Below are positions 15,558 to 21,748 of a stretch of 64,000 bases of DNA, in pieces (the first letter of the stretch is position 1; each line of letters opens with the position of its first letter). The translations under genes were made by a program, and so were the position numbers. The DNA is taken from the NCBI GenBank assembly GCA_028826165.1, contig JAPDFW010000073.1:62001-126000 (forward strand), in the 5' to 3' direction. The notes under the pieces are model-generated. The model ran no database searches and was not told the origin of the DNA. It saw only the letters and a list, made by a program, of their open reading frames with translations. The stretch comes from Anaeramoeba ignava BMAN (taxonomy: Eukaryota; Protista; Anaeramoebae).

Positions 15558-16593
15558 TGCGTTTTGTTTTGTTTTGTTTTGTTTTGCTTTTTGGAACAGG
15601 TGTGTATAGAGGAGTGAGGAAATCATCTCCTTTTGTCTGGTTTTCTTTAGTTTGAGGTTCATTTTCATATTCATATTCAGATTCATATTCAGATTCTTTT
15701 TCAGATTCTTTTTCATTCGAATTTTGAGTTGAAGTGTGAGATTCACCAATATAATTATATAATTCCTGGTTGAGAGTTAGATCGTGATTCTTTTCATTTG
15801 AATAAATTCCTTTTTCATTTTTAGATTCATCATCTTTTTCCATTTCGATTTGAGTTTTGATTTTGAATTCGATTTGAGTTTTGATTTTGATTTTGTCCCA
15901 ATTGTTTTAGAAGTGTTCTTTTACTTTCATTTTGATTTGTTTGAGGTGAGGAAAAGAATGAATTTGAATTTTGAAAATTTTGATAATTTTTTTGTTCCAT
16001 TTGTTGCTTTAGTTGATTCACTAAAGATTTGAATTCTTCTTTTTGTGGTTCTTGAAACATTGAAGAGTGCCATTTTGCTATGCCCTTTCCGATTTCTTCT
16101 TGGGTTTCTTTACTGTTACCATTTTTAAGAAGCTTATAACAAATATATTTTTTTTAGTTGAATTGGCGCCTGTACTTAAATTGTTGAATTCACTACGCAC
16201 TCCTAAATAATCCATAATTTGATAATATGGGCATAGGCTAATATTTCCTGTTCCTTTTCTCATATCACATAGTGAGAATGTTATCTGCTTGTTTTTTTTC
16301 TCTTGTATATGAGATTTTCAATATTATTTATTTTGATGTAATTCCAAGCAAATCAATTAATAAAAAATGAACAAAAAATTATTACTAACGAAATATTTCT
16401 TTAAATACCTTGTGATTGAGTGATTTCTCGAACATTTTGTGAAAAAATTTTGTAAATTTCTATTACCATTATTCTCGTAATTATTCTCATAATTATTGTT
16501 ATTGCGATTCATCTCTGCTTGCATATGCATTTCTTGAGTTTCATTAAAATTTCTTTCAGTTGAATTTTCAATAATTTGATCTCTGCTGTTCAT
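15457..16593 (-). pseudogene. Orphan gene or pseudogene of unknown function (fragmented), probably cargo of the adjacent element
   Basis: ORFs 16357-16593, 16078-16263, 15830-16060 and 15457-15843 join via a probable intron (GT at ~16408) and 1-nt shifts; N/Q-rich and E-rich low-complexity tail; no recognisable domain. Confidence 0.45.
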
Positions 16594-16619
16594 TACTTTA
16601 TTGGACTGGAATTCTATTT

Positions 16620-16883
16620 AAATTATTATATTATATTATATTATATTATATTATATTATATTATATTATATTATATTATATTATATTATATTATATTATA
16701 TTATATTATATTATATTATATTATATTATATTATATTATATTGACCATTTTTTCGAGAAGATATTATATTATATTATATTATATTATATTATATTATATT
16801 ATATTATATTATATTATATTATATTATATTATATTATATTATATTATATTATATTATATTATATTGACCATTTTTTCGAGAAG
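16620..16883. repeat. (ATATT)n microsatellite interrupted by two copies of TGACCATTTTTTCGAGAAGA
   Basis: 20-mer at ~16742 and ~16865, each preceded by ~100-120 bp of pentamer. Confidence 0.9.
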
Positions 16884-17124
16884 ATGTCCGATCAAATATA
16901 TATTTTTTTAGACCCCTAATTGATAAGAGAAACAACATAGGAAAGAGTTTGTTTGGTATAAAATAATATATTGGTTTTTTTATCCCAAAAATGAAATGGC
17001 CAAAATTCAAATGATTTTTTGGAACAAAATTCTTATTATGATTTCTCAGAGAAATAAATTAAAAAAAAAAACTAAAAAGAATATTTTGGGTGAGAAAGTT
17101 TTGTTTTGATGAAGAATTTATGTT

Positions 17125-18167
17125 TTAATATTTCTTTCTGATTTTTCTTTTTCTGTATTTCCCTGTGCTTGATAACAATCTCACATGAACCTCTCCTTTC
17201 CGCGTAAAAAGAAACTGATGATATTTTCGAATATTTTTTAGAGTTATTGTTTCTGTAATATGTTTATGAATGGCTAAAGTATTTTTCATGTTATTGAACA
17301 TTTCTACATATTCTTGGGGAGAATATTTTTTTTCACCTTTGAGTTTCAATCTGGTCTCAAGTTGTTTTATGTTACCGAAATGTCCATCACATCCAGAGCA
17401 TTCATGATGTGACACAAAGAAATTATATTCTATTGGAATTTTTAACTTTGGGATAATTTTAATAAAAAATAAAAAAGCTTGGAACTTTTAAAATGTGGAC
17501 CACCATCACTCCATATTTGAACTTTTTCATAAGATGCAAAATATTCATGCTCTTCAAGATAAGTAAAAGCTGAGATGACATATTTAGCATCTTGTGGAAA
17601 ACCTTGAGAAACAAAATCTAAATAATTGAGACTTCTTTCTCCTTCAGCATTTGTGATTCTAATGATGTTCAGATCAGACACTTGTTTTTATTATGTCCAT
17701 CTCTTCCACATCTCGAGCAATGGTAATGTCTTTTGGATCTCTTTCTTTTGGGCTTTTCTTCTTGATCTTGATCGGTTATTTCAATTGAAGATTGGACTAA
17801 ATTGTGAATTTGTTCATCCAACTTTTCTTTTTTTTCTTCCGTGATTTGAGAAACAATTTGAACAGCACTGTTCTTTGGGAGTTCCTGATCAACAGCATTA
17901 ATTAAAGGATTTTGTTCAAAAGTAAATGGAGTCTGGTTTGTAATCCTCCCCTTTTTTTGTTTTTAATTGAGAAACTAAATTGAAAAGGTGATAAATCAAA
18001 TATTTAGTTTCTAATTGGCATGGATCTTCGGCAATTCCCATTTGTTGAGCGTATTCTTTATATAAATTAATTGAACTTTTTGTTGACTTTTCAGTCTGTT
18101 TGGGGACCGAGATTCGAATTTGTTTTTGAAGATCTTGTTTTTCTTGAAGGATAAAATTTCTCTTCAT
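17125..18167 (-). mobile_element. Degenerate chimeric transposon coding region: Crypton-like YR N-terminal fragment + CCHC zinc knuckle + Sola-like DDE transposase C-terminal half
   Basis: 18167-17916: SVPKQTEKSTKSSINLYKEY..LKTKKGEDYKPDS; ~17935-17670 in another frame: KRHYHCSRCGRDGHNKNKC; 17681-17125: YLDFVS..QDAKYV..QIWSDGGPHFKS..(1-nt shift)IEYNFFVSHHECSGCDGHFGNIK..IRKYHQF. Termini not found. Confidence 0.7.
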
Positions 18168-18206
18168 GATAAAATGAAATATAATTAGAATTATTTTATT
18201 GTCCTT

Positions 18207-19235
18207 AAACTTATATTTATTTTTAAATCATTTTTGAATTAATTTAGATAATAAATTCTTTTTATAAATTATATAAATAAATTATCTTACATTTTAATTT
18301 TGATTTTTATTATTTAATTTTTGATTGAATTTATATTAAAAATGTTTAAAATATTTTATTAATTATTTAATAAAGAAAATAAATAATAAAATTATATTTT
18401 ATATTATTAATTTATTTCAAATTAATTTATACTTTAAATTTAATTAAATATTATTATTTAAATTTATTTAAAATTATTTTATTTTTTTGGAATAGAATTA
18501 ATTAAATTTAATTTTTTTTGATTTAAATTTATATTTATTTTTAAATCATTTTTGAATTAATTTAGATAATAAATTCTTTTTATAAATTATATAAGTAAAT
18601 TATTTTATATTTTAATTTTGATTTTTATTATTTTATTTTTGATTAAATTTATATTAAAAATGATTAAAATATTTTATTAATTATTTAATAAAAATTAAAT
18701 AATAAAATTATATTTTATATTATTAATTTATTTCAAAATTAATTTATAATTTAAATTTAATTAAATATTATTATTTAATATTAATTTAAAATTATTTTAT
18801 TTTTGGAATAGAATTAATTAAATTTAATTTTTTTGCTTTAAACTTATATTTATTTTTAAATCAATTTTGAATTAATTTAGATAATAAATTCTTTTTATAA
18901 ATTATATAAATAAATTATCTTACATTTTAATTTTGATTTTTATTATTTTATTTTTGATTAAATTTATATTAAAAATGATTAAAATATTTTTTATTTATTT
19001 AATAAAAATTAAATAATAAAATTATATTTTATATTATTAATTTATTTCAAAACATAATTTAAATTTAATTAAATATTATTATTTAAATTTATTTAAAATT
19101 ATTTTATTTTTGGAATAGAATTAATTAAATTTAATTTTTGTTTTAAATTTATATTTATTTTTAAATCAATTTTGAATTAATTTAGATAATAAATCCTTTT
19201 TATAAATTATATAAGTAAATTATCTTACATTTTAA
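18207..19235. repeat. AT-rich tandem repeat, ~305-317 bp unit, ~3.3 copies
   Basis: TTATATTTATTTTTAAATCA..GAATTAATTTAGATAATAAAT recurs at ~18210, 18528, 18844 and 19149. Confidence 0.9.
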
Positions 19236-19354
19236 TTAACATTTTCTCTTTGTTTTTTTTTATAAATTTGTTTTTGAAATTTTCATTTGATTTTTTCTTT
19301 TTATTTCTTTTTATTTTTTTAATTTAAAAAAAAAAAATGAAAAATGAATAAAAG

Positions 19355-19998
19355 TTTTAAAATCATTTCTTAATTAATTTTATTGCAAAATATTAAATTA
19401 ATTATAATTAAAAATTAAGTAAAATAATAAATAAAATATTTTAATTAAATTTATCTCTTGATTATTAATAATATTAATTTAATATTAATAATAAATTCTT
19501 TTTTAAAATCATTTCTTGATTAATTTTATTGCAAAATAGTAAATTAATTATAATTAAAAATTAAATAAAATAATAAATAAAATATTTTAATTAAATTTAT
19601 TTCTTGATTTTTAATGATATTAATTTAATATTAATAATAAATTCTTTTTTAAAATTATTTCTTAATTAATTTTATTGCAAAATAATAAATTAATTATTAT
19701 TAAAAATTAAGTAAAATAATAAATAAAATATTTTAATTAAATTTATTTCTTTATTTTTAATAATATTAATTTAATATTAATAATAAATTCTTTTTTAAAA
19801 TCATTTCTTAATTAATTTTATTGCAAAATAATAAGTTAATTATTATTAAAAATTAAGTAAAATAATAAATAAAATATTTTAATTAAATTTATTTCTTTAT
19901 TTTTAATAATATTAATTTAATATTAATAATAAATTCTTTTTTAAAATCATTTCTTAATTAAATTTATTGCAAAATATTAAATTAATTATAATTAAAAA
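19355..19998. repeat. AT-rich tandem repeat, 146-bp unit, ~4.4 copies
   Basis: TTGCAAAA at 19383, 19529, 19675, 19821 and 19967 (spacing 146 each). Confidence 0.92.
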
Positions 19999-20083
19999 TT
20001 TTTCATTTTTTTTTTCATTTTTTTCCTTTTTTTTAAAAACACAAAAACAAAAAACACAAAAAACAAAAAACACAAAACAAAAA

Positions 20084-21748
20084 ATGGATAATAATAATAA
20101 TAACCAAATTCAAAATGAAAATCAAAATGCAAATCAAAATGAAATGAAAATGAAATGAAAAATTTAGAAAAAAAAGTAACAAAAAATTTAATTAAAGATT
20201 ATTCAAACCTTTTAAATGGAAATTCATTTAAAGATTTTTCAATTTTTGTTGAGAATAAATCAAATCCTTTTGAAATTAAAGTTCATAAATCAATTTTATC
20301 TTCAAGATCTCCTTTTTTTAATGAGTCATTAAGGCAAGAATCTCTTTCTATTTCTTTAAATCAATTTAATAAAAAAGAAATGGAATCAATTTTGAGTTAT
20401 ATTTATTATGGAAATATTTCTTTTGAGAATCAAGAAAATCTTATTCAATTATTGGAAATTTCAATTTATTTTAAATTAAATTTATTGAAAGAAATTATTC
20501 AAAAAAAAATTTTAAATTCAATTAATTATTCAAATTTTTTCCAATTTTTATTCCAAAATCGAAATTTAAATTCAAATGAAATTGAAATAAAATGTTTTGA
20601 ATTAATAAATCAAAATTTTTCCCAAATTCAAAATAATGAAAATTTATTCAATTTAACTAAAGAAGAAATTATCAAATTTATTCAATTTAAACAAGAAAAA
20701 AAAGAAATTTTTCAATTTGATTTTTTTCAATTTTTAAATAATTGGATTGAAAAAAGAAATAAAAAATTAAAAGGAAAGAAAAGAAAAAGAAAAAGAAAAA
20801 GAAAAGGGAATTGAAAAGAAAAGATTATTTCATTCTTTTTTTTCATTATTTGATAAAGATTCAATTTCAAAACAAGATTTTGATAAATTAAAACAATTTG
20901 ATTTTTTTCCCAAATCTTTTTTAGTTGATATTCAAAACAAAGTTATTCAAGATAATCAAAAAGAAATTGAAAACAAAGAGAAGGAAATTGAAGATAAATG
21001 GAAGAAAGAAATTGAAGATAAAAACAAAGAAATTGAAAAGAATCAAAAAGAAATTGAAAACAAAGAGAAAGAAATTGAAGATAAAAACAAAGAGAAAGAA
21101 AATCAACAAATGAAAATTGAAATTGAAGAGAAATGGAAGAAAGAAGTTGAAGATATGAAATCCAAATTTGAATTAATGGAATTACAAAAGATTTTTTCAG
21201 ATTCAGAAATTGTTCAAGATATTGAATATGTTAAGAAATTACAAGAATGGATAAATGATAATGATTTTTTTTCTAAAATGAAAAAAGGATTTTCAGCAAA
21301 AAGAGATGGATTTAATTCTCAAAATTGGCATAAAGCAGTTGATGGGAAAGGAAAAACATTAGTTATTATCAAAACAAAAGATAATTTTATTTTTGGAGGT
21401 TTTACTCAAGTTGGATTTAAACCAAATGGAGGAGACATTAAAGATTCAAGTGCATTTATTTTTTCATTAAGAAATGATAAAGGAGATAGAATACCTGCAA
21501 AGTTTACAATTAAACAAGGCCAAGAAGGATATGCAATTTGTTCTCATTTAAGTTGTGGTCCAATATTTGGTTGGGATGGTCATGGTAATGATTTTCGTTT
21601 AGAATCTAATTTACAAGGTCATTCAAATTTTGGTCATAGTTATAATCTACCTAATGGAATTACTTGTGGAACAAATAAAGCTAAAAGTTATTTAGCTGGT
21701 TCTTATGATAAATGGATTGTTGATGAACTTGAATCTTATTTCATTTAA
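20084..21748 (+). CDS. BTB + coiled-coil + TLDc domain protein (intronless; apparent frameshifts at ~20150 and ~20800)
   Basis: FKDFSIFV..IKVHKSILSSRSPFF (BTB); GFSAKRDGFNSQNWHKAVDGKGKTLVIIKT..IFGGFT..AFIFSL..GPIFG (TLDc). Confidence 0.85.

Follow-up and report, generated by a model that had tools for sequence, protein, structure and literature searches.

We analyzed a 64,000-nucleotide stretch of the Anaeramoeba ignava BMAN genome (contig JAPDFW010000073.1, positions 62,001 to 126,000 of the forward strand), hereafter the window, whose minus strand carries between 17125 and 18167 the remains of two transposon genes, a Crypton-type tyrosine recombinase (YR) and a Sola2-like transposase of the DDD type, the latter belonging to what we call the B family. 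The evidence makes it rather likely that this locus is a non-functional chimera of two separate A. ignava transposon genes and not the relic of a transposon that encoded two enzymes. A sequence-only reading of the window had proposed an undescribed two-recombinase transposon as the parent of the locus; this proposal was not sustained, as no locus with both genes intact was found, the intact YR and B genes always occurred apart from each other, and the B loci of the sister species A. flamelloides lacked a YR. The window is part of contig C74 of an assembly of 42.8 Mb in 147 contigs and has a G+C content of 18.6%.

Along the minus strand the locus consists, in this order, of the YR head (83 residues), the acidic tail of the same protein, which includes the CCHC knuckle, and a piece of Sola2-like transposase (residues ~423-614) interrupted by one frameshift. 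The three peptide blocks named by the sequence-only reading were recovered on this one strand within ~1 kb, exactly where it had placed them, in three different frames. The first open reading frame (ORF) encodes 83 amino acids (aa; 18167-17919), from an ATG at 18167-18165 to a TGA at 17918-17916. The second open frame, of 97 aa, is acidic and of low complexity and contains the knuckle at 17719-17678, followed by a stop codon at 17671-17669, while the third, of 79-80 aa, ends shortly past WSDGG..HFK and the fourth, of 109-120 aa, includes NFFVSHH..CDGHFG and terminates with a stop codon at 17127-17125. The block has a G+C content of 31% against 8-18% in its flanks, and random sequence of this composition would hardly ever hold open frames as long as 83-120 codons (P about 3e-5 for 120 codons).

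The integrity of the locus was evaluated on contigs from four runs belonging to two independent studies, which covered the whole stretch with 0 indels and 0 joints. Since the contigs of the two studies agreed, the frame breaks near 17930 and 17675, which had been recognized from the first, are real and are neither assembly nor homopolymer errors; the same is true of a third break near 17445-17455, within the transposase part, which was absent from the original list. When the assembly was compared with contigs that other runs of this organism had yielded, 8 single-base differences (~0.7% of sites) emerged, located at window positions 17244, 17348, 17402, 17712, 17810, 17870, 17988 and 18032, and six of these eight allelic differences alter an amino acid in the homology frames. 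At the junction of the two gene remnants, the codon for the last Cys of the knuckle (17680-17678) overlaps in a different frame the Val codon of VSDL (17681-17679), the first transposase codon, and no transposase homology was found upstream of this point in that frame. The relic is an island between satellite arrays, with a ~316-bp array upstream and a 10-bp microsatellite downstream. Neither of the missing halves, namely the transposase N-terminus and the YR catalytic domain, was detected elsewhere in the window or in the 10 kb around C92 and C73, two further loci at which YR and B pieces adjoin.

The YR part was examined by profile searches. The 83-aa head matched the Pfam family QRICH1 (PF25561) with an E-value of 2.4e-6 and a score of 28 bits, just below the gathering cut-off of 30.8, and corresponded to positions 1-83 of a YR family hidden Markov model (HMM) built from the intact YR paralogs of the A. 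ignava genome itself, with an independent E-value (iE) of 6.5e-18. Compared with residues 1-88 of the intact C78 paralog the head was 35% identical; over 25 aa it was 72% identical to the YR piece at C73, which itself had ~46% identity to C78 in this stretch by our own count. Over 35 aa the tail shared 49% identity with residues 445-473 of the C78 recombinase, its C-terminal knuckle, and it displayed the exact pattern CX2CX4HX4C, in agreement with the knuckle originally described; UniProt labels the corresponding gene model as a CCHC-type domain protein, and hmmscan did not list PF00098 for the knuckle segment. About 300 codons, including those for all catalytic residues, are absent between head and tail, and no match to the YR catalytic domain (positions ~84-400) was found anywhere in the window.

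A genome search with the head returned long ORFs at C78:181652-183085 (477 aa), at C104 (an identical protein), at C82 (497 aa) and at C1 (truncated, 301 aa). The YR paralogs carry QRICH1 together with Phage_integrase, the latter with E-values from 5e-14 to 1e-16; the C78 protein showed QRICH1 at 1.3e-9 (38.6 bits) and Phage_integrase at 5e-14. The R..HxxR..H..Y residues are present in the intact paralogs, the catalytic motifs of C78 being LRGGE (from residue 172), HSLRA (289), GHKSS (314) and VQVYR (321), and in both C78 and C104 CSRCGEIGHNKKGC closes the acidic tail, just before the stop codon. These two loci have in common only a unit of ~2.5 kb, 93% identical, in which the YR is the sole long ORF. 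A word-based protein search with the C78 recombinase gave 3 matches and led to an outside relative (P0161) that combines DUF3504 (PF12012), QRICH1 (PF25561) and Phage_integrase (PF00589). As the paralogs carry QRICH1, Phage_integrase, the catalytic motifs and the knuckle tail, and the outside relative carries DUF3504, the N-terminal part and the knuckle tail of the window could be assigned by homology to a Crypton-type tyrosine recombinase family, the window copy being a gutted relic. The original view of the N-terminal block as a Crypton/DUF3504-like core-binding region was therefore upheld by the QRICH1 match, by the family HMM and by the DUF3504-bearing relative.

Several features link these sequences to known Cryptons. 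The window head matches QRICH1, and the intact A. ignava paralogs consist of a single ORF in a ~2.5-kb unit that codes for a YR alone, with no reverse transcriptase. The window copy differs in having no catalytic domain at all, and the A. ignava proteins differ in ending in a CCHC knuckle, for which a non-exhaustive literature search found no description among Cryptons. A similar loss was observed at C89:85858-88492, where tandem, internally deleted Crypton copies have residues ~22-60 joined to residues ~398-442 at a repeated LNF/FNF motif and were stitched by the public annotation into one 469-aa protein (gene model P0160). C89 is a parallel and independent loss of the Crypton middle in which head and knuckle tail were kept.

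Two side observations concern the YR family and its knuckle. At C1:85312-87696 the truncated 301-aa Crypton ORF lies ~600 bp from two opposite-strand ORFs that resemble pieces of MULE/IS256-type transposases (DG..D...C..H motifs), among microsatellites coding for IL/DF dipeptides. Very similar C-terminal CCHC knuckles (CS.CG..GHNK..C) occur on three unrelated A. ignava enzymes, i.e., the Crypton YR, several MULE-type transposases and a 1168-aa Sola2-like protein (loci C78, C142, C94, C30, C55, C60, C82, C91 and C64), and a C-terminal knuckle is also present on Sola2-like proteins of Naegleria and three other sources.

The transposase part was then compared with the B family. Its two segments matched the B HMM at positions 423-502 (17684-17448, iE 5.7e-22) and 493-614 (17478-17131, iE 3.2e-30). 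The piece at 17442-17684 is 44% identical to C51 and C64, and the piece at 17125-17454 is 38-42% identical to C51, C64, C62 and C92. The second Asp lies in WSDGG at 17513-17499 (Asp codon 17507-17505) and the third in HH..CDGHFG, with CDGHFG at 17391-17374 (Asp codon 17388-17386), while the first Asp, residue 409 of C51, is absent from the window copy, whose homology begins at strand beta2. Members of the family include C51 (616 aa), C64 (585 aa, KAJ5075746.1), the frameshifted C62, the pseudogene C92, the more distant C142 (1168 aa) and about a dozen more loci. As a separate observation, the Sola2-like gene at C62:269939-272252 is found in overlapping frames of 498 aa and 305 aa with a long (DED)n expansion in the N-terminal half, and either a frameshift or an intron would explain the break.

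When a library of 1.84 billion proteins was searched with a profile of the 300-residue C-terminal part of the B family, 2304 relatives were identified, 616 of them at E<1e-10, and those that were looked up came from Naegleria, Lithocolla, Phalansterium, A. flamelloides and unlabelled assemblies. In an alignment of 79 sequences D89 and D164 were invariant and D204 near-invariant, corresponding to residues 409, 484 and 524 of C51, with a spacing of 40 residues between the second and third Asp (segment positions 164 and 204). The AlphaFold model of the B segment (predicted local distance difference test score, pLDDT, 90) showed the RNase H order beta1-3/alpha/beta4/alpha/beta5/alpha and placed the three Asp at the canonical positions, the first following beta1, the second following beta4 and the third where the next helix begins. 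Foldseek returned the catalytic cores of the Rous sarcoma virus (RSV) and foamy-virus integrases as best solved matches, with probability 1.0. The B consensus (VMDFG, WSDGG.HFKN.KTF, NFF.S.HG) was closer to the blocks of Sola2-1_HM than to those of Sola1 or Sola3 in a comparison at motif level only, carried out with Sola2-1_HM, Sola1-1_AP and Sola3-1_HM as given in the RNase H alignment in the supplement of Majorek et al. (2014).

When the transposase part was searched directly against Pfam, against PDB sequences and by language model, no family was returned, only helix-turn-helix (HTH) hints and DUF7869-like clusters. Pfam, which has no Sola model, reported nothing beyond weak HTH for the B-family proteins; DUF7869 was reached by 5 of the 79 B members (best 4.8e-15), a weak link, and the ESM-Atlas neighbours of B, by features and by shape, were DUF7869 or DDE_Tnp_ISAZ013, weak links as well. 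The identity of the transposase was derived from profile search and from fold and motif comparison, not from direct family searches. On this basis the 3' part is a predicted Sola2-like DDD transposase of which the last ~190 codons remain without the first ~420, and the earlier proposal of the second and third motifs of a Sola-like DDE enzyme was borne out in a more exact form, as Sola2-like and DDD.

Sola transposases are DDD enzymes that generate 4-bp target duplications (PMC10741241, summarising Bao et al. 2009). The B family shares with Sola2 the RNase H fold and the D/D/D triad and resembles Sola2-1_HM in the blocks around the Asp residues (..GDF.., ..F/W-T/S-D-G-..-K-N-.-K-.-F.., ..NFF.(T/S).HG..), whereas the window copy represents only the last third, without the first Asp, and the family match stands at motif level. 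In the window and at the C51 and C64 loci, scans for inverted repeats yielded nothing but AT-rich pairs of low complexity and defined no terminal inverted repeat (TIR) or 4-bp duplication, the B copies at these three loci being single and too diverged for a definition of their ends. The internal deletions suspected at the outset, of the YR catalytic domain and of the first Asp region, were supported by the complete lack of matches to either in the window. With a YR devoid of its catalytic domain and a transposase devoid of its first Asp, neither enzyme of the window would be expected to work, and nothing suggests mobility of the locus or expression of a protein.

Profile searches of the 42.8-Mb genome located ~17 YR and ~21 B loci. 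Intact YR genes (C78, C104, C82, C61, C146 and C60) and intact B genes (C51, C64, C142, C24, C128 and C1) each stand alone: the other family was absent within the 10-16 kb read around eight intact loci, with no B near C78, C104, C82 and C1. In A. flamelloides, which was examined from the B side, all five B loci were free of a YR match within 6-10 kb. The search for longer copies holding a full YR and a full DDE gene together found none, and adjacent YR and B sequences were observed only at C74 (the window), C92 and C73, in all cases as fragments.

At C92:59469-60373, on the minus strand, B residues 461-609 lie about 100-160 bp downstream of YR residues 242-337, which include the HSLR and GHK motifs; the B piece is annotated as the 146-aa protein P0010 and a 37/341-bp satellite adjoins its 3' end. 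At C73, again on the minus strand, two copies of a 658-bp segment, 2.9 kb from each other (208351-209007 and 211263-211920, 96.5% identity), lie between satellites. Within this segment B residues ~487-560 run in the same frame into YR residues 48-120, an order opposite to that of the window and C92, and the B piece is 36-37% identical to C142 and only 27% to C51. All three composite loci adjoin satellites. The B pieces of the window and C92 share 43% aa identity with a synonymous divergence (dS) of ~1.4 and a nonsynonymous to synonymous ratio (dN/dS) of 0.37, like other pairs in the B family; for dN/dS the codons of the two transposase pieces of the window were fitted one by one to the protein alignment, and for the tree the pieces were joined with an X at the frameshift. 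As these values indicate that the two pieces diverged as working genes, the truncations that cut through the fold would be late and independent events.

These data led us to favour a dead juxtaposition of two transposon genes. The first component would be a copy of a Crypton-type element that underwent internal deletion, retaining its first 83 codons and the knuckle tail and losing the catalytic domain, and the second the final ~190 codons, with one frameshift, of a cut-and-paste transposase of the Sola2-like type. A Crypton may have inserted into a Sola2-like element or next to one, or Crypton DNA may have been captured while such an element was repaired, and deletions in this satellite-rich, recombination-prone region would then have trimmed both parts. 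The occurrence of the same juxtaposition at least twice more points to a common habitat in which elements land or decay, or to Cryptons favouring Sola2 elements, rather than to a native two-enzyme element. Repeated juxtaposition is favoured because the closely similar YR pieces of the window and C73 adjoin unrelated B lineages in opposite order, and a gathering and trimming of debris in recombination-prone arrays is suggested because the three loci are bordered by satellites and a fourth YR relic, at C1, adjoins MULE-like ORFs. A Crypton preference for Sola2 and a capture of Crypton DNA in Sola2 gap repair would fit the data equally well. Like other internally deleted or nested transposon relics, the window locus keeps the gene ends and has lost the middle, as in the Crypton deletion at C89, and is embedded in satellites with other transposon debris; it differs in that three loci show a pairing of Crypton with Sola2-like sequence, more than simple chance nesting would give.

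Some results weigh against this interpretation. The maximum-likelihood (ML) tree paired the B pieces of the window and C92 as sisters with support 87/78, and approximately unbiased (AU) tests rejected two of the three alternative pairings, C92+C64 (p 0.038) and window+C64 (p 0.027), while keeping window+C51 (p 0.097); the sister grouping would also fit one ancestral YR-B junction. The order at both loci is YR followed by the last third of B, and the three same-orientation YR-B pairs compare with ~0.01 expected at random placement, according to our rough estimate. The association of YR and B is non-random. Moreover, we infer the nesting or capture step from loci at which the scans could not define termini and target-site duplications, and the flanks of the YR loci C88, C89, C61, C146 and C60 were judged from search coordinates only, as were those of the younger Sola2-like copies.

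An explanation that gains from these points is a genuine composite transposon, consisting of a Crypton-type YR and a downstream full Sola2-like gene on the same strand, of which the window would hold a decayed copy after a non-autonomous-style deletion had removed the YR catalytic part and the transposase N-terminus. C92 shows the same order and orientation, its B piece groups with that of the window (87/78) with two alternative pairings rejected at p<0.05, and adjacent pairs are far above random expectation; furthermore, the B pieces diverged under purifying selection, so that with an ancestral junction both genes must once have been whole. However, A. ignava offers no copy with both genes intact, none of the five B loci of A. 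flamelloides has a YR, and both families have intact members apart from each other. C73, with its reversed order and its union of a window-like YR with a distant B lineage, does not fit a co-divergence within one element, the pairing of the window with C51 was not rejected (p 0.10) and the branch supporting the sister grouping is short (0.13) between long, fragmentary rows, and the DNA of the window and C92 shows no similarity outside the B core. We therefore consider descent from such an element unlikely, and the judgement is hardly changed when a variant in which the Crypton targeted Sola2 is included. Elements with both enzymes do exist in ciliates, and the statement of the sequence-only reading that YR and DDE enzymes rarely meet in one eukaryotic element was fair, although its example Tec is not alone, since Sardine and Thon of Paramecium have both as well (PMC3464196). 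The window resembles Tec, Sardine and Thon in having YR and DDE/D transposase sequence on one DNA stretch, whereas those elements occur in many copies with both ORFs intact within long palindromic TIRs and use a Tc1/IS630 DD35E enzyme; in the window both genes are fragmentary and the transposase is of the Sola2-like type, and a copy with both genes intact was found in neither of two Anaeramoeba genomes. As for the expectation that a one-off fusion would leave the two parts in separate elements everywhere else, this holds for the intact copies and fails for the decayed fragments, which adjoin at C92 and C73, and on account of these fragment pairs a composite lineage keeps a small chance. It is likewise doubtful that one Crypton sublineage, comprising the window, C73 and possibly C92, was specifically tied to Sola2-like transposons, either as a former two-enzyme element or as a Sola2-targeting rider.

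A further possibility, a special case of the juxtaposition that we regard as improbable, starts from a non-autonomous element of the Sola2-like type, in which Crypton filler DNA, copied for instance from an excised circle, took the place of the interior in abortive gap repair after excision; the Crypton pieces would be passengers within Sola2 ends, and Sola2 termini would be predicted on both sides. The retention of the transposase 3' third up to its natural stop, as in cut-and-paste deletion derivatives, the overlap of 3-4 nt of homology at the junction, as in microhomology-mediated joining, and the recurrence at C92 and C73 with a different YR segment each time are all in keeping with this mechanism. 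The scans, however, found no Sola2 5' end, TIR pair or 4-bp duplication, and the YR start codon adjoins the satellite; the YR head begins exactly at its own ATG, which is unexpected for random filler, and both genes have the same orientation in all three events.

The locus is present in the public annotation as KAJ5073612.1 (P0004), a 267-aa protein with four exons (18167-17976, 17884-17678, 17600-17502 and 17430-17128). The three introns of the model (17975-17885, 91 nt; 17677-17601, 77 nt; 17501-17431, 71 nt) are all of the GT..AG type, and each of them removes paralog homology that continues in the frame of the neighbouring exon up to the frame break; among the sequence lost in this way are a portion of the conserved YR head and the GPHFK motif that follows the second Asp. 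No spliced joint was found in the contigs of the four runs covering the locus, and none of the runs on record as RNA holds the stretch. Since the introns cut coding homology and no spliced joints were seen, the four-exon model appears to be an artefact that bridges frameshifts with false introns. A real, spliced host gene would instead be a domesticated chimera, in which the YR head, the knuckle and the transposase part serve as a non-catalytic nucleic-acid-binding protein. Crypton heads have reportedly been domesticated as DUF3504/QRICH1 genes in animals, and the pieces of the window keep long open frames with a coding-like G+C content, besides the public model with its GT..AG introns of 71-91 nt. 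This explanation is nonetheless very improbable, as every predicted intron takes away in-frame paralog homology and RNA runs and contig joints give it no backing, as described above. In addition, the retained transposase part begins and ends inside the RNase H fold and, according to the model, would form no domain, six of the eight allelic differences are non-synonymous, and no orthologue occurs among the B-family matches in the sister species.

The coordinates of the gene remnants, of the neighbouring repeats and of the gene model introns are collected in Table 1.

Table 1. Features of the composite locus and its surroundings (window coordinates).
Feature	Positions	Strand	Basis or remark
YR head remnant, residues 1-83, QRICH1/DUF3504-associated core-binding domain	17916..18167	-	paralogs read on past its TGA
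YR acidic tail with CCHC knuckle and stop, second frame	17669..17953	-	CX2CX4HX4C pattern; C78 alignment
Junction of the two gene remnants	17678..17681	-	codon coordinates; B homology starts at HMM position 423
Sola2-like remnant, residues ~423-502, strands beta2-beta4, second Asp	17442..17684	-	B HMM
Sola2-like remnant, third frame, residues ~493-614 to natural stop, third Asp and C-terminal beta domain	17125..17454	-	B HMM
Satellite, period about 316 bp, starting at the recombinase start codon	18158..19371	.	repeat search
Satellite, 146 bp, next to the ~316-bp satellite	19209-20084		repeat search
Microsatellite of 10 bp, (TATATTATAT)n, lying about 200 bp downstream of the transposase stop	16573..16928	.	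repeat search
Span of the three 'introns' of the KAJ5073612.1 model	17431..17975	-	exon mapping

The two adjoining satellites with periods of ~316 bp and 146 bp, which together occupy window positions 18158-20084 directly upstream of the relic, have a G+C content of only 8%. A ciliate genetic code, considered in view of the 18.6% G+C of the window, was ruled out, as paralog frames of 477-1168 aa are free of TAA and TAG and the organism is A. ignava.

Finally, the results bear on the annotation of A. ignava and on the biology of its transposons. A public 'hypothetical protein' of this organism would be a stitched pseudogene of two transposon relics, so that the outcome is mainly an annotation clean-up, and the parts belong to known kinds, Crypton and Sola2. 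The occurrence of similar knuckles in three unrelated transposon enzymes may hint at a common need for host interaction or nucleic acid binding. If a two-enzyme element had existed, it would be the first outside ciliates and the first with a Sola partner, while Sola2 serving as a landing site would represent a transposon parasitising another transposon family. Should the pairing at three loci reflect targeting or co-mobilisation, and not common graveyards, it would amount to a rare dependence of one DNA transposon family on another.

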